A DNA stretch of 64,000 nucleotides from NCBI GenBank assembly GCA_010909165.1, contig VJWM01000254.1:62001-126000 (forward strand), read 5' to 3'. The DNA is from Anthoceros angustus (taxonomy: Eukaryota; Plantae; Anthocerotophyta). Position 1 is the stretch's first letter; every line of letters starts with the position of its first letter. Below the pieces are notes generated by a model. It made no database searches. It saw nothing but the letters and a program-made list of their open reading frames with translations, and was not told the DNA's origin. Shown one piece after another: positions 5,054 through 62,801 of the stretch. A program made the translations under genes and the position numbers.

Positions 5054-7062
5054 CTAGTAGACATGGAGCGGCAAGCGAGGGGTTGGGACTGCTTTAAGGG
5101 GACACTTCATTGGGACAGAGAGGCCATATTCTTCGGACATGTCTAGGTCGTCTGGTTTTTGTCCTTGTGGAAGGCACCAGTCGAAGCTGTGGACCAGCTT
5201 AGCAAGGAAGACGATGGATACAGTCATGCCCTGAGAGATGGCAGGGCAGATCCTTCTGCCACTTCCAAAAGGGAGTATGTCGAAGTTTTGTCCTTTGACA
5301 TCAATGTCTCTGTGCAGAGTGGCAACAAGCAGCTGAAATCAGATGGGTACAGAACATCAAAATTTTCTCTAGATTAGTAGACAGACTGTGAGGCTTCAGC
5401 TGTAGACCAACTAGACATACTGACCTTTCTATGAATCTCTCTGGCCGGAACTCGAGAGGACTATCCCAAGCTTCTGAGCTTCTCTGAATGTTCCACGTGC
5501 TGACGAGGATAGTGGTATTGGCAGGAATGTCGTATTCCCCGAGTGTGCAGTCTTGGGTGGAGTAATGTGGGATAAGGAAGGGATTGACGGGATGAAGTCG
5601 CAGAGCCTCCTTCAAAACAGCTTGGAGGTAGGGAAGACTAGCTACATCTGACTCCTGCAATTGCCGATCCCTCCCGACAACCGAGTCCATCTCTTGCTGT
5701 GCCTTCTTCAACATATGCGGGTTCCGGAGCAGTTCTGCAAAAGCCCATTCTGCTGCCACGACAGAGGTGTCAAGTCCAGCAAGCAACATATCCTGAGACA
5801 GTGAGCACAAAGACGATTGCAGAGTCAGATACAACGTTCGTGTGGTGTAACCTGTTCACATAGAAAGATGCTCAGAGGATCGTTAGGATGAAATCAAGCA
5901 TAAACGTAACCAGGCTTCCATGTACCATGAGCATTCCTTTCATGGCCAGATCTTTGTCGACGCCTTTTTCCCCCGGGAGAGCCAGCAGCACATCAACGAA
6001 ATCATGCGGTGACCAATTGCTGGTTTGTTTCATTTGCTGTCTTCGTTTGTTAATGATCGTGGATAGGAGGGAGCTCATTCGGTTTCGGAGCTTGCGCATG
6101 GCTCTGATGCTGAATGCGTCCAGAAATCCCAGGAAAGGAATGCTGTCCCCTAGAACCGGACTTCCCAGCAGCCGGATGGTTTCACGAAGCACCGAAATGT
6201 ACTCGGCTGCCTCCTGCGGATCCACCTGCGTACCGTTGATGTGCACCACAAAAACATTCTCTCAGTCGCGGAAACAAGAAATGGACTCGTTTGTCCACAA
6301 TTTAGTTGGAGCAAGATCGAAGAGAGAAACTCTGGAGCTCACCAGATCAGATCTCTCCCCGACCTGTTCTCCAGTCTCAAATGTACAAAAGCGCTTGCTC
6401 ATCAGCATCTGGGTCATGTTGTTCATTGTTACAGAATTTCCCAAGCCGTGGATGTCGACCGGTCCCGGAATCTTATGCAAGACAAATCTCATTGCAGCAG
6501 CCAGTTCCTCGTCTCTGAATTGCTCAAATCGTTCAAGTCTCTTGGGCGTCAACAGCTCCGTCACCATGATCTTCCTGACAAGGCAATCGAACGATGTGCT
6601 ACATAGCACGTTACCAGTACAGCAGGGTTGCAAAACAACGTTAACGGACATCAATCAGGCCCACCTCACGTACTGGTGCCTGGATCCGAGGGCCTGAAAT
6701 GCGCATGTTCCTTCCTGGAAAACCAGATTTTGGTAGGCTGCAAGGGGAGCCCGAGATGCGAAACTGCCGTCCTGCACCTTCAGCACCTCTCTGGCCATGT
6801 CCCCGGACGAAATGACGACAGCCAGGTTTACGCCCAGGCGGATGGACATGACAGGACCGTGCTCCTTGGCCAGCTCCTCTAGAAGAACGTGCGGCCTGGC
6901 ACTTGCGAAAATGGAGAGGTTCCCTATCACTGGCCATGCTGGCGGGCCTGGAGGAAGCCGCAGCTTCCTTGTGCTGCTTGACCGTTTTCCGAGCTGGTAG
7001 GCAATGGGCACGATTGCCAGCAAACCCACCACAACAAGCAGGACTAGATGAATCGAATCCAT
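5054..7062 (-). CDS. Cytochrome P450, CYP71 clan (A-type), 5 exons
   Basis: Exons 6665-7062, 6343-6574, 5926-6225, 5425-5792 and 5054-5309. The N-terminal anchor, LPPGPPAWP, I-helix AGLDT, EALR, PERF and heme motif FGSGRRICPA are all intact. Confidence 0.93.
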
Positions 7063-7399
7063 GAGGCAACAGCCTCGTGCTCCTCAACACTACCTAGCAA
7101 TTAAACAGCAATTTAAGCAGAACTACTCTCGGCTGAATCAGAATTCTGAACTTGCAAGTTGCAAGTGCTGCCGAGTCTGCAGTCTCTCCGGAGTCTGGAA
7201 CCAGCTCTGTGACATCCCTGAGGCCATGGAACGTATTGAACGATATGGCCCGAAATATCTCGGTCATTCTGAGGTCAAAGAAAGGAGGAAAAACTTCGAT
7301 CGAATTCATGGAACCAGACATCAAATTCTTGCGTCCAGAGCACGCACCTCATTAGTATCTGTTGTGTATAGTACAGATAGTGAGAGAAAGAATGGTGCT

Positions 7400-7591
7400 T
7401 TGAGGGTGACACGTCGCTGGAACAGCCAGTCCAACGAAGTGGCAGACATGTCTAGGTCTTCTGGTTTTTGTCCTTGTGGAAGGCACTGCAGTCGAAGGTG
7501 TGGACCAGCTTAGCAAGGAGGAAGCTGGAAGCAGTGATGCCCAGAGTGGTGGCAGGGAGTAGGTCGAAGTTTTGTCCTTTGGCATCACTCT
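7400..7591 (-). pseudogene. Orphan copy of the P450 terminal exon with the heme motif deleted
   Basis: Near-collinear with 5130-5309 (KGQNFDLLP...LAKLVHTFD). It has a 27-bp deletion of FGSGRRICP and a 2-bp insertion frameshift, and no upstream exons were found. Confidence 0.85.
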
Positions 7592-8531
7592 CTGTGCAGG
7601 ATGAACTGCAGTGGAACACAAGGCGCGAGAAACGAACAAGATGGACGGGTGTTCCTGTGCCCAACACACCAACCCGTCATGTGAATGTGGTAAAGAAAAA
7701 TGTTATTACTCAACGAGTAAATAAAGGTTTTCAAGAACAACCAATGGACAGCCCTAAGTCCGCTATGGACGAATGCGAACAACACTAGAACAACTGCCTT
7801 TTATGCTTCGTAGACTTGTGCCTTCCTCTTCCTCAACAACTACAACGTGTGACGAAAACTCGAAAACAGTTTCACCCTTTTTGGTAGACAAAGCTAAGAT
7901 CTTGTTTGATGTGAAAAGGATATGGAGCATGTAAGGTTAGTGTGATGCTCAGCCTCTTGTTCCAGTTACTCACAAGGAAACAACTAGTGTGTCACTTTTT
8001 ATGCACTCGTTCATTCAACAATCATATTGGCATGGATTTATAAACTTGTCCAACAATCTAAAAAAGAGATGGTAGTGTGGAGGACATCTACCGTTCAACT
8101 ATCGTCCAAAGTCAGTAGCAAGTTTATTCCACATTCAAAACATCGAGTACAATACAAATGGATACATCCATTGGTTAGCCTTGAGTAATCTCACTTCAAT
8201 TATTCTTGACTTTTTTTTCAAAGATCCTATTTGTTTCACCATTATGGGCAGATCGTCAAGCACACATGGATACCAAAGCTCTAAATACGATTATTACTTG
8301 TCAAAAACCCTCACGTGATAATAGAGGCCAAATATGCAACCTACAAATAGCAGAGTTCCTACGAATAGCGTTCTCCTGACAGCCGGCTGTTGTTTTCTAA
8401 TGCTTTCTTGTACTGATTAACGAATTTATTACCGCTAAAAAACGTTCCTACAAATAGGAAATGACCTACAAGTGCAAAGAACTTAAAAGCAGGAGGACAC
8501 TCGACACAGAAAGACTATTGGAGGTGTGGCG

Positions 8532-10211
8532 ATGAAGACCGTGGTAGGCATTCATTTCGGTGCTGAATTTTGCACCCTTGCTTACAGCATGGGGTTCAGG
8601 GACGCAATCTTCGACATGTCCGAAGACTTTTCAATGACAAAAGAAGAAAATCTTAGATTTCCCACCAGTCTGTATTACGGTAAGGAGAATGACATGCCTT
8701 CACTGTACAAGCTTAGGTGTTGGGGTTGGGAGGCGGAGTGGCGTTATGAAATGGACCTGGATTGCCAATCGGAAGCACGGAAGGCCAGTAAGGGCGTGTA
8801 TATGAACAGATTCAGGGAATACCTTGGCTTTGGCAACGTGCCTTCCCAAGGCTGGTGGCAGGGGAAACAGAAATCTACAACTCCAAGCTTGATTAACATT
8901 TCTGCAGATATGATCGCAGCTATTACCACCGCCTTTTTCAGGAAGCTCTCTAGCTTTGTCGTTGCAACTCTGAAGGAGAAGTATGGAAGTAACTTCACGA
9001 CGAGGGATATCCACTGGTGCCTCACTGTACCAAGCATTTGGGACGGTTCTGCACTCCAGAACCTACGCGAATGCGTGGAGAGAGCGGGCATGGTGACGGG
9101 CCCCTTTTGCCCACCACAAGCTGCAGCTGAAGCAAGTACTCATCCTCTGCTTCTCGTTCTAGAGTGGGAAGCGGCAGCATTGGATTGTTGTAGAGGAGTC
9201 AGAGCTGTGGAGGAAGGATCTAAGGTTTTAGTGGTAGATGTGCGGAGTGTGACTACGAACATCGCCATTTTAGAGGAGTGTGAAAGGGGCTTCATTCTTG
9301 TGGAGGGATGCTCTGCTGAGGGCTCTTATTCTTTCAATGATGTCAATGAGACGTTTTACAAGATGATGCAAGCGAAGATTGGTGAGCGCTTCGATCAGCT
9401 TATGCAGCAGAGGCGGAGCGTCAGGAGTCGGGTGCAGGTGGTATGGGAAGCTCTTTATGCTGGCTACTACGGGAAGCAAGACACGGTCTACTTGAAGTTG
9501 CCTGCACGTCTGAGCGATTTATTTTATGGGGCAAGGAACGTCGAGAGAATCGATGTCAACCTGAAGCAGGTATTCGAACCACTGGCAGATGATCTGATCC
9601 GACTGATCAAAGGGCAATTAAGCCCCGACGTGAGGGGACTGTTCCTGATGAGTGAAATCCCGATTCCGCCTTACCTGGGGCTGAAGATAAGAGAAACCTT
9701 CGGAAGCAGGTTTGGTGACAGCATCCGGATCCCGCCCAATCCCAGCAGAACAATGTGCCGAGGAGCTGTGATGTTCGGGCTGTCACCTGCCTTGCAAGTG
9801 TCCCGTAGAACCTACGAGTTGGAGAGGCAACGAGTTGGAGCTCCAATCCGTTCCCTCTATCCTAAGCTCGATGACACTTCTAACGAAGCTCGGCCGAATG
9901 CTAGTGAGGCAGGGCTCACGAATGAACTCAACAGCGCTCCGCCAGTTCTTGCGGACGAAGGGGAGTCTCCGCCAGTTCCTGAGGATGAAGGAGAGTCTCC
10001 GACAGTTCTTGAGGATGAAGGGGAGTCTCCGCCTGTTCCTGAGGATGAAGGGCCGTCTCCGCCAGTTCCTGAAGATGGTCGGACTCCCCTTCAGAAGGTT
10101 CGGGAGCACTTATCTGAGTTTGTAGGAAAATGCAAGTCTTGTCTCGCAGTAGTATCAACATGGCTATCCAAGCTGCGCATAGTATTGGGGAAGCATGAGA
10201 AGACCTTGTAG
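8532..10211 (+). CDS. Intronless Hsp70/actin-fold protein of the HSPA12-like type with degenerate ATP-binding motifs
   Basis: ~560-aa open frame with VVGIHFG, PTSLYY, WGWEA, HWCLTVPSIW, LEWEAAA, VLVVD and PPYL at the positions of HSPA12-family motifs. It ends in a C-terminal Pro/acidic repeat. Confidence 0.75.
   Translation: MKTVVGIHFGAEFCTLAYSMGFRDAIFDMSEDFSMTKEENLRFPTSLYYGKENDMPSLYKLRCWGWEAEWRYEMDLDCQSEARKASKGVYMNRFREYLGFGNVPSQGWWQGKQKSTTPSLINISADMIAAITTAFFRKLSSFVVATLKEKYGSNFTTRDIHWCLTVPSIWDGSALQNLRECVERAGMVTGPFCPPQAAAEASTHPLLLVLEWEAAALDCCRGVRAVEEGSKVLVVDVRSVTTNIAILEECERGFILVEGCSAEGSYSFNDVNETFYKMMQAKIGERFDQLMQQRRSVRSRVQVVWEALYAGYYGKQDTVYLKLPARLSDLFYGARNVERIDVNLKQVFEPLADDLIRLIKGQLSPDVRGLFLMSEIPIPPYLGLKIRETFGSRFGDSIRIPPNPSRTMCRGAVMFGLSPALQVSRRTYELERQRVGAPIRSLYPKLDDTSNEARPNASEAGLTNELNSAPPVLADEGESPPVPEDEGESPTVLEDEGESPPVPEDEGPSPPVPEDGRTPLQKVREHLSEFVGKCKSCLAVVSTWLSKLRIVLGKHEKTL
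9939..10088 (+). repeat. 30-bp coding tandem repeat x5 (PPVPEDEGES)
   Basis: Five in-frame units of the form CCGCCAGTTCYTGAGGATGAAGGRGAGTCT. Confidence 0.95.
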
Positions 10212-11476
10212 CGGCTTCGATTTTGGGAACCCATGCACCCGAAACTTGTCATGGAGGCGGTGCTGCATTTTCGATCTAAGGTAACTTGAAAACGGGATGT
10301 CATGCCAGATCTGTTATGACAGACCCCGCAATGTGGTGATTTGCTTCGTGCTTTCATAGTCAGTGTTGTGACGATGGTGACTGTTCCGCGCTTTCTTACT
10401 GACTTGCTTCTGAATGACTAGAACTAACAGCAACATCTTGGCTCTCGCTTTCTTTCCAGACCTCTTTCATCAATATACACCTACCAGACATCGTTCATAT
10501 GGTTTTGCCGACGGTGGTGTAGCATTAGTGCAGCGCTAGTTCACGGGGTGAGGCCCACCCATCCCTTCCAACAATGTTTTTCTTTTCATTCTTTGAAATC
10601 ATCTCGGTACTGCTCTTGTGCCATTGGACCAACGAAGCGCACAAGCACCCTTGGAGGAAAGGTGTTCTTCATTAGTGTGCTTAGACAAGCCAACGACGGC
10701 CAGAAGGAAGTTCTTGAAGCGAAGTTCTAGTTAAGTTCCTCTCTACATCGGCCCGAGGAAACTCGATGATCTGCTTGTTCCCCAAATCAAGTTCTCGCAC
10801 CTCCTCTGGGCCTGCAACGCTCTTGATTCAAGATCATCATCTTCTGTTGTTTCAAACTTGCCCAAACCGAGACTCCCAACCATGGCCCGACCACCAATCC
10901 GTCAGAGTCCTTGTCCATATCCCCTTTCATGAGTGAGAGGCACCTCCAAGGCGCACTGGTCTCCCCACGAGGCGTCTAGTGCACAGCTCAATGTGGGCAT
11001 GCGCATTGCAGAGGGCAGCATCGAGCGCGCATGCGCACAGATGGAACCAACCAGGCACGCAGCGAAGCATCCCGGTTGGTCACCATGGCTGGCAAAACTC
11101 TACCGTTCAATAGATTCGAAATCAGCAGCACATGAGGTGGCACGATAAAATATCCGCGACAAGAGAAAACAAATAGAATGGCGCCCCAACAGTTTATCAT
11201 TTATTCCAAAATAGAAAGGGTCGTGGCACAGCAAGCATTCCGCCACACTTTCGCCAGGCGAGGAGATGGCGAACACCGTCGCCCATTTGGCAACGACGCT
11301 GAGTCCGGGGGAGACGAAGACCAGCCCTCCAGCCTCCCCGCCTACCGACGCCTGGGGCTGTTCCTGCCTCAGAGCGCTGCTCTGCCTGCCCGGCTGCCGC
11401 GCTGACTGCCCCCGACGGCCCCGACTCGGGAAGAGCTGCCGGCCTCGCATTGCCCGAGGAGACGCGCATTACAGTC

Positions 11477-14400
11477 ATGGCACGGCGCCAGGATGCGGAT
11501 GGCGGGGGCGTGCGCATTCGCTTCCTGGGCCCGAGCGACTGCGGCAGCGCAGCTCGAATTGCCAGCGCGGGCCTCGGCAAGGCCGGGGAGAACCGCGATC
11601 CCCTGCACCAGCTGCAGCACGCGCTCGTGAATTGCCAGAATGCGGTTGTGGGTGGAATCGGGGCCGCGTTCGCCGAGCTGCAGGGGCGGGATGCGGGGAG
11701 GAGGCGGGCCGGGGCGATCTCCTGGCCGAAGGATGGGGCTCTGGAGCACGCCGGGACGGTTGTGGGCGATTCGGCGGAGGGCTGGACCGCCCCTGGGACG
11801 CGGGCTCGGAGGGGGCATGCGGGCCTTGGTCCCAGCAGAGTGGCCATGGTGTCTTATGCCCCGCAGCGGGGGACGTATGCGTATGATGCGCTTCAGCGCC
11901 GCTGGAAGGTCAGCAGCTTGCAGGGGGGAAACGCCTGTTTCGGTTAGGTCTGGATTGCTGGTTTTCCGTGGTGTTGGATTTTCTGGACTCCTGTTGCAAT
12001 GCTGCTGGAGTTCATGGCTGGCCGATTTCTGTGGTGGGGATTGTGCGTTCAGCTGGCGGAATTTAGTCAGGAGATGCTGTTAGTGCTTGATGCAGGAAGG
12101 GTGTTTGGAAGTGGTTTCAGTGTCTGAGAGTGCTGTGTGGTGGGCAGGTAAGTGTTGTTACTCTGTTGTGTCGCGCAGAGTTCGATTTTGTGCAACTTTG
12201 ACGATTTGCGTGTGCACCGGCTTTCTGACTCCAAGTTTGCATTGTAGGAGCTGGACAGAGACGGTGTAGGTTTCATTTCTGAGGGTGATCTGAAGGTGGC
12301 GTTGAAGAGGCTCAACTTGCCTGCTTCTGAGGAGGTTCATAGCTGCCTTTTGGTTTTGCAAGTGTTGCTGCGTCGTCACGTTCTGTGAGGGTGATCGTGT
12401 GCTGAGTGAATGCCGAGGGTGATTGCCTTCGGCGGATGTCATGGGAGATGAAGGTGCCTGTTGCTTGTGACTAATTGCGTCGTCTTGCTGGACCTTGGAT
12501 CCCGTGTCGTGCACAGGACGTGGAAGCCTTTGTTAATCAGGTCGCTGCTACATCGAAGAGCGGCACTCTCACCTTCGAAACCTTTGCTGAGTATGCAATC
12601 AACAGAGAAAATGAGCTTCTCAATACGTTCAAGGAACTTGACCAAAGAAAGGTGACCGTCAGCTTTCGTGATGTTAGACTTGGTTTCGATCTGTCGTGAT
12701 ATGGCCACCAATATAATATCGCCTTGTGCTTGACCAGATTGGCTACATAACCGAAGCTGAGCTGAAACAAGCTCTGCGGAAGTACAAATTCAGGTAGACT
12801 TTTTTTCTTAATCACATCCCTCGGCTCTGTCTTGGGCATCTTTTGGTGCCCTGATCAGCTACAGGCACTCTGCACTTCTGTTATTGTGGGCGTGGTGTAT
12901 GAGATGGATGCCCAACCGCTGACATACTCACTTGCTGTAGAATTGCTGACAAGGATGTAAAGAAGATGATCGACCGGATGCACGTGAGGGGTGGAATGCT
13001 TGGATCTCAGGATTTTTACAGCCAAACCAAGGCCTTCGATTTTGCTGAGTTCAGGTGCGTCGTACTTAGAATTCGCTGATTGGGAGTTCCTGCACCTGTG
13101 TTTGCATGGAGCACGTGCAACTGTAGACCGTCTACATCAGGTTTTCCGTGTGTTACTGAATGCAGTTCTTAGGTACTCCATGCAGGTGACTTCTGGCTAG
13201 TGCATACATGTGGAGATAACTCTTTGTCCTCATCGTGAGTTTGTGTGTGAATGTTCAGCAGAAGCTCTCAGAGTTCACACAAAATTTCACCCCGATTTTG
13301 AATTTACGTCATCGTTTTGCAGAGATTTCTTGATGTTATCCACTGCCAAAGATCTCAGAGATATTTTTGAAATCTGGGGAAGGGCTGTTATTGACTTAGG
13401 GGATGCAGACACAACTTTCCCAATGTCTTCTGGTACAGCTCTTCCTGGCCTTGTACCATTTGATTGACAGTTACATCGCTGTCAGGCAATGTGTTCTGAA
13501 GCTGTATTTTATGTACCGGAGTGCCTCGCAGTGAGCTGACTTGCTCTCGTATACATTACAGGGAGATACAACAAGCAGGGACGAGTTGGTCAGAGACGAC
13601 CGAAAGTACAGGTTCTTAAGCATCTTTTTGCAGGAGGCATGTCTGGTGCAGTATCAAGGACCGTTGTAGCCCCACTTGAAAGAATTAAGGCAAGTGTTGT
13701 GCTGTGTTTAAGGTGGTTTTGGGTTTGTAGCATCACTAGCAAACTATTCATGAGCTCTTTGCCTCCTTGTAGGTTATGTCCATGGTTGACTCAGATCTGG
13801 CCAGACAAGGATTCACCGCTGTTCTTAAAAAGATCTGGCGGTAAGTTGTCCATGTGCATATCAAGCTGTACTGTGTGTTGGCAATGCCCCTATTGCTAAA
13901 TATCACTAATGGCAGACCCATGCAGGGAGGAGGGTGTCCCTGGTCTTTTTAGAGGCAACCTATTGAATGTTTTGCGTATTGCACCCACCAAGGTATGCTG
14001 CTCTGGTCGTCGCTGCCAGTAAGCACTACTAGAGATACCTTTGTGTGGGATAAAGCACGTCAGTGCACAGGGAGGCATCAAAGCTTGACACACTGGTGTG
14101 TTGGAAACAGGCTGTCGAGTTTTTTGTATATGACAACCTCAAAGACGGGATTCTGAAAAGAACAGGACGGGTAGATATCAGTGGTCCAGAGCGGATGCTG
14201 CTTGGGTCAGTAGCATCAATGGCGGGAACCTTTGTGACACATCCTGTGGATACAGTGAGATCTGTTGTGACAGTACAAGGACCTCGGGCAGGTCGATCAT
14301 TGGTGGATGTGACTCGTGACATCATCCAGCGGGATAGTTGGTTGGGATTGTACAGGGGTCTAGGTCCCAACATGGTATACCACTTGCTCTATGGTGTCGT

Positions 14401-26787: not shown

Positions 26788-27239
26788 GGCCTCGCCGAAA
26801 GCGTAGGAGAACACCTGCTTGGCTGTTGCCTCCTGGCTGGCGCTGCTGTTGGAGCTGCCGCTGCTTAGACTAGTAGACGACGACACTCCTCCAACACGCT
26901 TCGCTGCTTGCCCGCTTGCCCGCTTCCCCGCTGGTGGTCACCGGCTGTTTTGGTGCGACCCGATCCTGCCCTTGCCTTGCCTTGCCTTGCCTTTCCTTTC
27001 CTGTCCTTTCTCTTCTTCATCGCCATCTGCTTGCTGGGCGGTAGTGAAGTGCGCTGCTCGGCGCTTCCCTGCTGTGGGCGTTTGTGGGTTTTTTGTGGGC
27101 GCCAGTGTCTCGTGATTTGTGAAGCTTGCTCTGGTGTGGCATTGCGGGATCGGCATCGCCCAGATCTGGGAGCAAGGTGGGTGTTTGGTGGGTGGATCCG
27201 AGGGAGGGCAGGTGTGGAGAAAGGAGCAGAGCAGCAGCC

Positions 27240-29446
27240 ATGGAGGACGCCACGTACACGCCGAAGAACATCCTCATCACAGGAGCCGCGGGCTTCATCG
27301 CCAGCCATGTGGCCAATCGGCTCATCCGGAATTACCCGCACTACAAGGTGGTGGTGCTGGACAAGCTGGACTACTGCTCCAACCTCAAGAATCTGCTGCC
27401 CAGCAAGCCGTCCAAGAACCTGAAATTCGTCAAGGGGGACATCGCCAGCGCGGATCTTGTGAACTACCTGCTGCTCACGGAGGGCATCGACACCATCATG
27501 CACTTCGCGGCGCAGACGCACGTCGACAACTCCTTCGGCAACTCCTTCGAGTTTACCAAGAACAACATCTACGGGACCCACGTGCTGCTGGAGGCGTGCA
27601 AGGTGACGGGCATCATCCGCCGCTTCATCCACGTGAGCACGGACGAGGTGTATGGCGAGACGGAGGCGGACGCCATCGTGGGCAACCACGAGGCCTCGCA
27701 GCTGCTGCCCACCAACCCCTACTCGGCCACCAAGGCCGGGGCCGAGATGCTGGTCATGGCCTACGGCAGATCCTACGGGCTGCCCGTCATCACCACCAGA
27801 GGGAACAACGTCTACGGGCCCAACCAATTCCCGGAGAAGCTCATTCCCAAGTTCATCCTGCTGGCCATGCAGGGCAAGTCGCTGCCCATCCACGGGGACG
27901 GCTCCAACGTCCGGAGCTACCTCTACTGCGAGGATGTGGCGGAGGCCTTCGAGGTGGTGCTGCACAAGGGGGTGGTGGGCCACGTCTACAACATCGGCAC
28001 CAAGAAGGAGCGCCGGGTGCTGGATGTGGCCAGGGATATCTGCAAGCTCTTCGGCACCGATGCCGAGCAGGTCATCCAGTTCGTGGACAACCGGCCCTTC
28101 AACGATCAGAGGTACTTTCTGGACGACGCCAAGCTCAAAGATCTGGGCTGGCAGGAGCGCACCACCTGGGAGGAGGGCCTGCGGAAGACCAAGGACTGGT
28201 ACACCAGCCACCCGGAATGGTGGGGTGATGTGTCCGGGGCGCTCGTGCCGCACCCGCGCATGCTCACCATGGCGGGTGTGGAGAAAATCTCCGACTTCAC
28301 CGCTGCCAACGGGGATTTGGACAAGGAGGGCAAGAGCAAGCCCAAGGAGGCCCGCCTGGATGGCGTTGTCGCCAACGGGACTCGGAATGGGATGCTTGTT
28401 CCGCCCAAGCCTGCTGCCAAGACTCCGCTCAAGTTTTTGATTTATGGGCGCACTGGCTGGATCGGGGGCCTCTTGGGAGGACTCCTGGACAAGCAGGGCA
28501 TCGCCTACGAGTACGGGTCAGGGAGGTTGGAGAACAGGGCTGCCTTGGAGGCCGATCTGGCTTTGGTCAAGCCCACCCATGTCTTCAACGCTGCGGGGGT
28601 GACTGGACGCCCCAATGTTGATTGGTGCGAGACCCATAAGGTGGAAACCGTCAGAGCCAACGTCGTTGGCACCATCACCCTGGCTGATGTCTGTCGGGAG
28701 CAGGGGATTCTGCTGCTCAACTTTGCAACCGGTTGCATCTTTGAGTACGATGCTGCCCATCCTCTGGGGTCTGGTGTTGGTTTCAAGGAAGAGGACACTC
28801 CCAACTTCACTGGCTCCTTCTATTCCAAGACCAAGGCCATGGTACGTGTGTGTGTGTGTATGCCCACTGCTTCTGTTTTTTTTTGCTTGTCATTCACCAG
28901 GGAGCCCACTGGGAGTGTTTTGGTGGCCTACTGCTACGGAGTTAAGCACCCAGTGATGTGGTAGTGAATGGACTCCGTTTGTTTGTCGTGCAGGTGGAAG
29001 AGCTTCTGAAGGAGTACGAGAATGTGTGCACTCTGCGTGTGCGCATGCCCATTACAGCTGACCTGAAGAATCCACGCAATTTCATCACCAAGATTACTCG
29101 CTATGAGAAGGTTGTCAACATCCCCAACAGCATGACCATCCTGGACGAGCTTCTTCCTATTTCCATCGAGATGGCCAAGCGGAATCTCACAGGGATCTGG
29201 AACTTCACCAACCCGGGTGTGGTGAGCCACAATGAGATCTTGGAGATGTACAAGGAGTACATCGATCCCTCTTTCAAGTATGTCAACTTCAACCTTGAGG
29301 AGCAAGCCAAGGTTATTGTTGCTCCTCGCAGCAACAACGAACTGGACACGTCCAAGATCCAGAAGGAGTTCCCAGAGTTGCTTGGAATCAAAGAGTCTTT
29401 GATCAAGTTTGTCTTCGAGCCCAACAGGAGAACTACAAAATCCTAG
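27240..29446 (+). CDS. RHM: Trifunctional UDP-glucose 4,6-dehydratase/3,5-epimerase/4-keto-reductase (UDP-rhamnose synthase), 2 exons
   Basis: GAAGFIAS, HVSTDEVYG and YSATK in the dehydratase half; GRTGWIGG and YSKTK in the reductase half; single intron ~28843-28994. Confidence 0.97.
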
Positions 29447-58900: not shown

Positions 58901-61900
58901 AAAACAGCGTATACAACAATGTGAGGATGACTTGACTAAAGTGGATGAAACAGTTGCAACTTTGAAGCAAGAGTTCAGCAAACGAACAGGGGAAGCAGAG
59001 GCACTTAAAATTAGCTTAAACAACGCTCGTGAGAAAGTAATTGCTGCAGAAGAACTGCTTCAAAAGCTGGGAGGAGAAGAGATGCGGTGGAAGTATCAGG
59101 TAAGCCTAACAACCTACGGAAATTGCAAAATGCGTAAGTCTGTATGCAAACCAAAACTAACAAGTATGCGATGGGCAGGCTCAACAACTGGAAAACGACA
59201 TAAGTGAGCTAGCTGCCTCAGCTATCATGGCAGCAGCATTTATTACATATCTGCCTGCTAGATCGGAAGACTACCGTGAAGCCATGCAAATAGTGTGGCA
59301 GAAGCTAATTCGCTGCACTGATCAACATGGAGGCCCAACCTCTGAAACCAAACCATTCGACATAAAGAATTTCATGTCGACAGACCAGATGGTTGTTTGG
59401 AAAAATGACGGTCTCCCTGCTGATGATTTGTCAATGGAAAATGCTATCGTTGTTCGCCACTCCAAGCTATGTCAGTACATCATCGACCCATCATCTAAAG
59501 TAGCAGGCTGGCTAATTCAGTGTTTCAAAAGAGAACAGACATTGTATGAAGTAGTGGCCCAGAAAGATGCGAATTTCACCAAGTCGCTGGAGTTGGCAGT
59601 ACGGTTCGGAAAAAAGCTGCTGGTCCAAGATGTAGAACAAGTTGAGCCCATGCTCTATCCTTTGCTAAGGAATGACTTAAGTCGCCAAGGTTCCAAGTGG
59701 ACTCTGCAACTTGGTGGTATTTTGGTGGACTACAACGAGGACTTCCAGCTATACCTCTTTACTCGGGAGTCTGCACCTCGGACATCGCCAGATACCATGT
59801 CGATGCTCATGACAGTCAATTTCAACGTCACGAAGTCTAGTCTACGCAGACAGTTGTTGACAACCATTCTGATTCATGAACAACCACAGCTTGAAAAGCA
59901 GAAGGCTTCACTATTAAAGGTACGCAACCTGGCACTGCTGCCGAGTCTTGGCATGGCCCGGCCAGCAAAAATGTTCGACATCCCCTCTCTCTCTATAGGA
60001 GTGAAACATCTAAGAACTAACGACCACCCTTGTAATTGCAGTTAGAAGAACAGTTGCATCTACAACTCATAGAACTTGAGAAACTACTACTTGAACAGCT
60101 TGCAACATCGAAGGGTGACCTCCTGGAAAACAATATGCTTATCAGCTCACTAAATGAAACAAAGATCAAGAGCAGCTCCATCGAAAAGTCACTTGAGGAA
60201 CTTAACACTCTGCAGATGTCCCTGACGGCACAAAGTAACAAATATGAAGTCCTTGCAGACATGGGAAGCTCCCTATGTTTCGTTTTGAAAGGCCTGGCTA
60301 GTCTCAACCCCATGTACTGCTTTGGACTCCAGACTTTTGTACAATTGTTTGAGAGGGCGCTTGATTCTCAGACTGTCAACGAACTACAACAGAGCGAAGT
60401 GGAAAGCTCACAGCAGATAGCACAACGCATCTCCTACTTATCCAAGAGGCTTCTGGGGTTGATATACACCCACATATCAAGGTCACTATACAAAAGTGAT
60501 CGTCTCACTTTTGCTATGCACCTAGCCCAAAGTTTTACAATGCTAGAGCAAGTCTCGAAGCTAGAGCGTGACCTCTTTCTGCGGCTTCTCACATCAACTA
60601 AGTTCATCACTGGCAATGATCAACCATTGGATGAGCAGTTTTCACTTCCTTCTTGGATACCAGCAGCCCAGAAACAAACATTTATGCTCATGCATGCTGC
60701 ACATCCCACACTAGTCCAATCCATGAATATTCACAATTCCCAAATCTGGACAGATTGGATGGAGTCCCCAATTTGTGAAACTAAGTTCTCAGATACCGTT
60801 GCCAGTCATACAAGTTCATTCCAAAGGCTATTGATGATCCAGGCACTCAGGCCCGACAGGCTGGAGCAGGCAATGAAGAGCTACGTCTGTCACACCCTTG
60901 GGCTGTCATCCTTTGATGCAGCACCAGTTTCCCTCCCAGATATACTAGCTTCCGAGACCAGTGCAGACCAACCAATCCTATTCATCACAGCACCGGGAGC
61001 TGACCCCTCGCTGGAGGTAGAAGAATTTGCTCTCCGGCAGGTGGGGAGATCCAACTATCATCAACTGGGCATGGGACAGGGTCAAACTGCAGAAGCTCTG
61101 AAGATGCTACATGACTCCGCAGAAGCTGGACATTGGCTTTTCCTCAAAAATGTACACCTGGTCACAGCATGGTTGCCAACCTTAGAACGGGAGATTCATA
61201 CCCTATGTGCACACCCTGCCTTTCGCCTTTGGATGACATCCGAACCTCACAAGGATTTCCCAGGTAGTTTGGCAGAAGCAAGCTTAAAGATTACATGTGA
61301 GCCTCCCCCAGGAATTACCAACAAGCTCCGAGGAATATATGGTGGATGGACGCAGGAATTTTTCTCCAAAATAAGGCCACTCGAAGGACAAATGGTCTTT
61401 GCACTTGGTCTTCTTCACGCTGCAGTACAGGAGCGAGTAGCATACGTTCCCAAGGGGTGGACAACCCCCTACGAATTCAGCCTTGCTGACTTCAGATCAG
61501 CAGTGGACATCCTGCTCGCTGTCACAAAGAAGAGAGAAGAGCCTCCATGGGCTCACATCCATGGACTGCTTGTATGTGGTATATATGGTGGCCACATTGA
61601 CAATCCAATTGACGCTGCAATTTTGGAGACTTATGTCAAATGCTATCTGTCTGACGCACTCATAACAGCAGGAAAAGCTAACCGAAATTGCCAGGAGCCT
61701 CCAATGGTCCAACAATGTGACTTGGATGAAGGGATCATATATGGGGACACTCGACTTGTCCTCCCAATGTCTTCCAGCTTAGCTGAATACCTGGAGCTTT
61801 TAAGGATACTACCTGATGTAAATGCACCAGCTTTTCTGGGGTTGCCAGCAAATATTGAGACGTCATTGCAGCAATGCAACGGAAGAACCGTGCTCACTAA

Positions 61901-62801
61901 GTTGAAGGCAATGACAGCATTACGTTTAACATCTGGTCAACTGGACAGAGAGCAGCTCTTCACACATCTTTCTGCTCTATTTCAACTATCCGATACCTCC
62001 ATACCCAAAGCACTAAAAGAGCTGGAAGATTCTGTGAGGACCCCGATAAGGGCTCTCCCAGAAGATGCTTCGTTTCCTGTTAAGAAGTTCCTGCAACTAG
62101 AGCTTGAGTTCTCCAAAACAATGTTGCTTACAGTTAAGCAGTCACTCTCTGAGATCTCTGACATACTCAACTCTACGGTGACTCCTGAAGCTCAGAATCT
62201 GGCAGACTGTCAGACTTTGGTTGCAGGTCATATTCTCCAAACCTGGAAAGACTTGTGGGAAGGTCCTGACGATCCTGTCCAGTATCTCAGAGGTGCACTA
62301 CAAAGAAGCGAGGCAGTGAACACCTATTTCCAAATGGCTGCTGCTCAACAACTGCAAATCAATCTGTTACGTTTGTCAAAGGTTTTCCACCCACACAGAT
62401 ATCTTAGTTCCCTTCGACATCAAGCTGCCAGAATGTCCAGGACAACTATAGATAGCCTGGCGCTCGTCACCACATGGGACAGTCCACATGAGATAGAGGA
62501 AAGCATCTGCTCAATCTCAGTTGACTTGTGCATAGAAGGAGCTCTGTTCAACGGATCCAGTCTATCCAGATGTTCTGAGAAGTCACAGCAAATATCTTGC
62601 GTCCCATCTTGCAGATTTTCATGGTTGGGAAAAGACACACCTCACCCATTAGGTTCATTCATGAACATACCCCTGTATGAGACAGTCGAACGATCAAAGG
62701 CCATAGCACAAATACAAGTTCCATGCAAGCCGGAAGAGAAACCACTTTGGCTACTGTCTGGGCTAGCATTCTTCTTACCAACCAAACTGGTGGAGACCTA
62801 G
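43937..62801 (+). CDS. DYNC2H1: Cytoplasmic dynein-2 heavy chain (retrograde IFT motor, DHC1b); 5' end uncertain; many short introns
   Basis: Tail motifs SIADEFLAW and [19 protein letters not shown]; AAA1 [11 protein letters not shown]2 [11 protein letters not shown]3 GPEQCGK and the dynein-2-type AAA4 GRTGVGRRT; stalk/MTBD; C-terminus [10 protein letters not shown]. Confidence 0.95.

Follow-up and report, generated by a model that had tools for sequence, protein, structure and literature searches.

Positions 8532-10211 on the forward strand of a 64,000-nucleotide stretch of the Anthoceros angustus genome (assembly GCA_010909165.1, contig VJWM01000254.1, positions 62,001 to 126,000; the whole stretch is called the window below) encode a 559-residue protein that belongs to the HSPA12-type branch of the Hsp70 nucleotide-binding domain (NBD) fold. 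It is moderately probable, in our judgement, that the gene is a vertically inherited, frame-selected paralogue of an HSPA12-like family whose product is not an ATPase and acts as a non-catalytic binding NBD. An earlier description made from the DNA letters (the sequence-only reading) had called the protein a candidate pseudo-ATPase, and this proposal is a reasonable one, given that only 5 of 21 key ATP-site residues are retained and that, judging from simulation, the open reading frame (ORF) was kept open in the meantime.

The reading frame, its family and its fold

The entry in the ORF list runs from 8526 (GTG) to 10211 on the + strand, with the first ATG at 8532 and a TAG stop at 10209-10211. 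The long intact ORF first claimed from the letters is indeed present, with 559 uninterrupted codons, and it is among the three longest ORFs of the window. By simple arithmetic, a stop-free run of this length has a chance probability of about e^-29 at the local base composition. The GC contents of the three codon positions (GC1/GC2/GC3 = 0.55/0.44/0.54) are coding-like, and the upstream flank is AT-rich (GC 0.39). This is a real, intact gene. The exact protein is absent from public assemblies, and the gene has no paralogue within the 64-kb window. The two features on which the following sections depend are:

8532-10211, + strand: complete coding sequence (CDS), 559 codons plus TAG, intron-free (from the ORF list and the sequence)
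8532-9827, + strand: Hsp70/HSPA12-type NBD with an actin-like fold, residues 1-432 (from AlphaFold, Foldseek and hhalign)

Searches of Pfam (E<=1), NCBIfam, PADLOC and the PDB sequences with the single protein gave no relevant match, and PF00012, the HSP70 entry of Pfam, was not matched at E<=1. Because the protein itself does not match PF00012, its membership of the Hsp70 superfamily rests on transitive homology: 25 of the 29 relatives in an alignment of its closer relatives (A1) do match that entry. A word-indexed protein search yielded one match with the protein as query and one uninformative match with the alignment as query, low-complexity words having probably interfered. An exhaustive phmmer search over 1.84 billion cluster representatives found 501 relatives, ten of them at E<=1e-30, the best being P0002 (E 1.3e-42, 36% identity).

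The HSPA12-type Hsp70-fold call of the sequence-only reading agrees with the results of phmmer, profile searching, hhalign, Foldseek and the ESM-Atlas. A profile of the alignment matched the NBDs of DnaK, BiP and Hsc70 in the PDB at E ~1e-17, and most of the PDB matches stop near chain residue 375-405, at or slightly beyond the end of the NBD. Profile comparison and structure prediction, the checks that had been suggested for this fold call, were both run. When the protein was aligned by hhalign to a family profile of 29 members from which it had been left out (657 positions), residues 2-431 fell on profile positions 15-467 with 100% probability and an E-value of 2.9e-54. An AlphaFold model built from 115 sequences is confident over residues 1-432, with 292 residues at pLDDT>=90, and predicts disorder from residue 434 onward. 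Foldseek placed this model closest to the NBDs of Ssz1, DnaK, BiP and Hsp110 (E ~1e-15; TM-scores by target 0.62-0.70), with Ssz1 at the top. In the ESM-Atlas, the structure clusters that come closest are one of streptophytes, 'Hsp70 domain' (TM 0.67), and one of chordates, 'heat shock 70 kDa protein 12A' (TM 0.64); a relative from Selaginella carries the NCBI name 'heat shock 70 kDa protein 12A-like'.

The plant HSPA12-like family consists of lid-less proteins that combine an Hsp70 NBD with a small C-terminal domain. In the Anthoceros protein, the canonical Hsp70 linker, beta-sandwich substrate-binding domain and helical lid were not encountered, residues 434-559 being predicted disordered. 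Two proteins of the moss Ceratodon purpureus, P0027 (712 residues, 'protein kinase domain-containing' in UniRef) and P0010 (1858 residues), carry an HSPA12-like NBD; because they are much larger proteins with the NBD inside, the domain appears to have been reused as a fusion module.

The nucleotide-binding site

The motifs that hold ATP were checked in alignments of 29 (A1) and 114 (A2) relatives, and the four that had been named as degenerate read exactly as claimed:

8553-8576, + strand: degenerate phosphate-1 loop HFGAEFCT, residues 8-15 (family DFGTTFSG)
9159-9176, + strand: LEWEAA, residues 210-215 (family LEPEAA), with both Glu retained and Pro replaced by Trp
9237-9260, + strand: degenerate phosphate-2 loop DVRSVTTN, residues 236-243 (family DxGGGTxD)
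9648-9677, + strand: degenerate adenosine motif MSEIPIPPYL, residues 373-382 (family VGGFxxSPYL)

In the phosphate-1 loop the Asp has become His and two Thr have become Ala and Glu. The phosphate-2 loop retains Asp236 and Thr241, its three Gly being replaced by Arg-Ser-Val, and in the adenosine motif Gly-Gly has become Ser-Glu. A conserved Lys at position 309 is replaced by Tyr. The scaffold motifs listed as kept in the earlier description, WCLTVPSIW (162-170), PTSLYY (44-49) and PYL (380-382), are present as stated, and so are the family blocks WGWEA, PPNP..C.GAV and RTYE. In all, 16 of the 21 key ATP-site residues are replaced. Most of the 114 relatives retain at least 19 of the 21, and only one of them, P0059, is comparably degenerate (6/21).

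In all actin-fold ATPases, glycine loops clasp the phosphates through their backbone NH groups. Because GGG has become RSV in the phosphate-2 loop and GG has become SE in the adenosine motif, clasping of the ATP phosphates is predicted to have been lost. A different view would be that the protein still binds nucleotide, holding ATP or ADP in a non-canonical way as Ssz1 does, and serves as a nucleotide-dependent switch. Glu211, Glu213, Asp236 and Thr241, which we take to be the counterparts of Hsc70 E175, D199 and T204, are retained; the best structural match is Ssz1, a protein that binds ATP without hydrolysing it. We nevertheless regard such a switch as very unlikely in the face of the replacements in the phosphate-2 loop (all three Gly), the adenosine motif (both Gly), the phosphate-1 loop (Asp and two Thr) and at Lys309.

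The C-terminal region

A conserved C-terminal domain, some 150-190 residues long and occupying profile positions 468-657, is present in the relatives and absent from the Anthoceros protein: the hhalign match of the latter ends at position 467 of 657, and what alignment there is past residue 432 is spurious. A tblastn search found no remnant of the domain in other frames. Its place is taken by a tail:

9828-10208, + strand: C-terminal tail, residues 433-559, predicted disordered (from AlphaFold, hhalign and tblastn)
9937-10077, + strand: in-frame tandem repeat within the tail, 30 nt x 4.7 copies, with SPPVPEDEGE-like units

The tail is acidic and proline-rich, has pLDDT <50 over residues 434-517, and continues after the repeat for about 45 residues in which AlphaFold places low-confidence helices. 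Synonymous and non-synonymous differences are mixed among the repeat units, and no signal of selection could be drawn from them.

Origin within land plants

The named relatives are from lycophytes (Diphasiastrum, Selaginella), mosses (Ceratodon, Sphagnum), liverworts (Calypogeia, Riccia) and a fern (Adiantum). More distant matches, which made up the other half of a first tree, include Mesostigma, the cyanobacterium Prochlorothrix and Kipferlia. In a careful IQ-TREE analysis, with the motif columns removed and six more distant family members, including one from Mesostigma, used to root the tree, the Anthoceros protein falls, with support 100/99, inside a clade of 43 rows in which every named member is a land plant. 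Its sister there, with weak support (87/57), is the unnamed clade P0002/4/5/6/11; one member of the latter, P0005, is encoded on a plant genomic contig next to GRAS, SPT2 and Nop genes. The gene was thus most likely inherited vertically within land plants, as a lineage-specific, fast-evolving paralogue of the HSPA12-like family.

The sequence-only reading had raised the possibility of horizontal acquisition, and a fungal or bacterial donor might seem to be favoured by the intronless coding sequence and by the feature-based Atlas neighbours, which are mostly fungal clusters. However, the CDS is also intronless in Diphasiastrum, in Ceratodon and on the P0005 plant contig (gene length equals 3 x (residues + 1)), and because these relatives share it, the absence of introns is not peculiar to the Anthoceros copy. 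By structure, the best Atlas match is a streptophyte cluster; among named relatives, the lycophytes, mosses, liverworts and fern listed above come nearest; and the nesting within the land-plant clade holds when the tree is rooted outside it. Transfer from a fungus or bacterium is therefore scarcely credible. The angiosperm Hsp70 set against which the gene had been viewed proves to be the wrong frame as well, since the window contains a dynein heavy chain gene:

59227-62798, + strand: C-terminal exons of a dynein heavy chain gene, GC3 0.46-0.49

Flowering plants lack dyneins, so the presence of this gene marks the host as a flagellate, non-flowering plant.

Selection on the reading frame

Neutral point mutation of the CDS of a canonical relative (L001) was simulated in 500 runs; indels were ignored, which makes the simulation conservative. 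Replacement of 16 of the 21 key residues required 0.69 substitutions per site (median). At that point the median run had 22 in-frame stops and no run had fewer than 10; the first stop appeared after a median of 16 substitutions. Because none of the 500 neutral runs was still stop-free at that degree of motif loss, it appears that the ATP site was lost while selection held the frame open. Neutral evolution could account for no more than the most recent ~1% of the divergence.

A number of results weigh against a selected, non-catalytic role. The terminal branch leading to the protein is 2.02 substitutions per site long, about three times the median of 0.64. Across all well-conserved family columns the protein retains 59% of positions (family median 89%), the second-lowest value in the alignment, as would fit relaxed constraint on the whole domain. 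The enrichment of changes in the motif windows is modest, with Fisher p-values of 0.024 and 0.010 at conservation thresholds of 70% and 80% and no significance at 90%. Degeneration extends beyond the ATP site, and the whole domain evolves fast, as these alignments indicate. The predicted loss of the phosphate clasp is itself read from sequence alone. Among the 1.84 billion cluster representatives there is no orthologue (best identity 36%), hence no dN/dS ratio, and current selection is unproven. Finally, no adjacent partner gene was found. In Ceratodon purpureus (CM026424.1, L003:1-1458) the gene immediately preceding the HSPA12-like gene P0007, on its upstream side, has a weak GIL1_IRKI_C Pfam match, and a tblastx search with this neighbour found no such gene in positions 1-24000 of the window.

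Expression adds to the points on that side. The RNA evidence comes from a single public run (X1), in the form of contigs only, and the RNA nature of the run is a guess. One 234-nt contig, identical to the window and with a depth of 3.9, covers 10115-10280 and 10460-10527. The 179 nt that it skips begin with GT and end with AG when read on the + strand, and the AG is preceded by a pyrimidine tract. The contig thus represents a spliced transcript of the + strand, in which the final 97 nt of the ORF are followed by a 3' untranslated region (UTR):

10212-10280, + strand: first 3' UTR exon segment (from the RNA contig, which starts inside the ORF at 10115)
10281-10459, + strand: spliced GT..AG intron in the 3' UTR (from the RNA contig junction and the sequence)
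10460-10527, + strand: further 3' UTR segment (from the same spliced RNA contig)

The remaining body of the ORF has a depth of 0 in X1, and the neighbouring genes have depths of 125-335. Because the exon junction lies 69 nt past the stop codon, beyond the usual 50-55-nt rule, the mRNA could be a candidate for nonsense-mediated decay. The evidence for expression is real but thin, and the transcript is scarce. The description 'intronless' thus holds for the coding sequence; it does not hold for the transcript, which has an intron in its 3' UTR, nor as a peculiarity of this gene, since it is a trait of the family. Targeting of the mRNA by nonsense-mediated decay would, as a side observation, fit its low abundance.

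Many of these results would also be expected of a dying gene, that is, a member of a birth-and-death family that was once a non-catalytic or weakly functional paralogue and now drifts neutrally, with an ORF that is intact only because inactivation was very recent. The very long terminal branch, the low retention of conserved positions, the missing orthologue, the loss of a whole domain and the minimal RNA evidence all fit such a history. On the other hand, a drifting frame would acquire its first stop after no more than about 16 substitutions (~1%), so that almost all of the divergence and motif loss must have come earlier; the locus is still spliced and transcribed from the + strand; and AlphaFold models the domain with confidence. 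We consider a dying gene a real possibility, if on balance an unlikely one.

Proposed function and relation to other Hsp70-type proteins

The selected, non-catalytic reading can be put in mechanistic terms as follows. The Anthoceros copy has kept the actin-like NBD fold and lost the glycine loops, together with the acidic residues and threonines by which ATP-Mg is held; it has also lost the C-terminal domain and gained a disordered, acidic, proline-rich repeat tail. With the frame held open by selection during these losses, the protein would for most of its history have had a use other than ATP turnover. It may have served as a non-catalytic NBD that works by binding through its surfaces, possibly by pairing with ATP-competent HSPA12-like paralogues of the same genome, or by competing for or titrating their partners. 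Ssz1 and Hsp110, which use an Hsp70-type NBD as an interaction module, would be precedents, with the Anthoceros protein the more extreme case.

The closest comparison is with HSPA12A and HSPA12B, atypical Hsp70s of animals, and with the 'heat shock 70 kDa protein 12A-like' proteins of seed-free plants, with which the protein shares an Hsp70-type NBD containing the family-specific blocks WCLTVPxIW and PPNPxxxxCxGAV. Like HSPA12A and HSPA12B, it has no canonical substrate-binding domain or lid, and its TM-score to the chordate HSPA12A cluster is 0.64. It differs from the HSPA12A-like family in that its ATP loops are destroyed (5/21), it lacks the plant family's C-terminal domain and a disordered repeat tail has been added. 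Ssz1 of the ribosome-associated complex and Hsp110/Grp170 are likewise Hsp70-fold proteins in which the main task of the NBD is interaction or regulation and not hydrolysis. However, both Ssz1 and Hsp110, which bind ATP (ATP complexes PDB 4gni and 6gfa), have retained the glycine loops and a substrate-binding domain, whereas the Anthoceros protein has neither. Fast-evolving HSPA12-type proteins are also found in bivalves, which have large lineage-specific HSPA12 expansions (the Pacific oyster has 113 HSP70 genes) with members described as stress-responsive (PMC11268181).

The P0059 cluster, hypothetical proteins of 444 residues encoded on JGI metagenome contigs, provides the nearest parallel to the degeneration. 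These proteins are likewise NBD-only, with 6 of the 21 key residues and no C-terminal domain, and their adenosine motif has Ser and an acidic residue in place of Gly-Gly, as in Anthoceros; the two are only 25% identical. The destroyed ATP site of P0059 reads ELETE, HIGKET and ISDPHCPSY. Because near-identical copies occur on several contigs, intact degenerate members appear to recur in the HSPA12-like family. A quick tree paired P0059 and the Anthoceros protein as sisters (SH-aLRT 88), a pairing that was rejected as long-branch or convergent attraction, the two being separated in the IQ-TREE analysis. Because the pairing vanished once the motif columns were removed, the resemblance is most likely convergent. 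A broader proposal is that seed-free land plants repeatedly derive NBD-only, nucleotide-blind HSPA12-like forms (the Anthoceros protein, the P0059 cluster and the partly degenerate P0107 and P0138), which would act as dominant regulators or decoys of an HSPA12-like chaperone or conflict system. This is speculative and, in our estimate, quite unlikely.

HSPA12-type Hsp70s have no established biochemical role. The Anthoceros gene would be a natural separation-of-function allele, in which the fold is kept, ATP binding and the tail domain are lost and the frame is under selection, and it could reveal activities of the family that depend on the surface of the NBD rather than on nucleotide cycling. 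Its value is limited by the missing orthologue and the thin expression evidence, and the prospect of horizontal transfer, which was the source of its apparent unusualness, fails. A literature search found no paper joining 'HSPA12' and 'land plants', and HSPA12 has 0 occurrences in a survey of moss Hsp70s (PMC5028893); the term 'pseudo-ATPase' occurs together with Hsp70 in a preprint on GRP170.

The surrounding genes

The gene had been placed in an accessory part of the window, a description that the neighbourhood does not support, since it sits between an expressed cytochrome P450 gene and an expressed exon and is free of transposon-like repeats. The features concerned, with one more distant gene, are:

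5301-7280, minus strand: multi-exon cytochrome P450 gene, with ORF pieces at 5301-5834, 5872-6249 and 6655-7062 (from the Pfam p450 match and an RNA contig)
11342-11909: GC-rich expressed exon, depth 125, spliced onward past 11909, with overlapping ORFs on both strands and no Pfam match
27126-28961, + strand: NAD-dependent epimerase/dehydratase ORF with a very high GC3 of 0.82

A 3282-nt RNA contig with a depth of 335 ends at 7280 and probably derives from the cytochrome P450 gene, which is divergent from the HSPA12-like gene at a distance of about 1.25 kb. No notable ORF lies between the HSPA12-like gene and the exon at 11342. No transposon-like terminal repeats flank it, and no direct or inverted repeats around it point to a transposon or retrocopy. 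A scan for bacterial promoters and terminators gave nothing, which is irrelevant for a plant. Positions 7445-7587 resemble positions 1593-1760 of the RNA contig that ends at 7280 (13 mismatches, 29 gapped letters); they may represent a repeat, or a piece of the adjacent transcript that was duplicated. Shortly before the start codon, where the sequence is AT-rich, the two copies of a direct repeat, CCTACAAATAG..CCTAC, lie 107 nt apart at 8340-8362 and 8447-8469; this repeat could be a promoter element.

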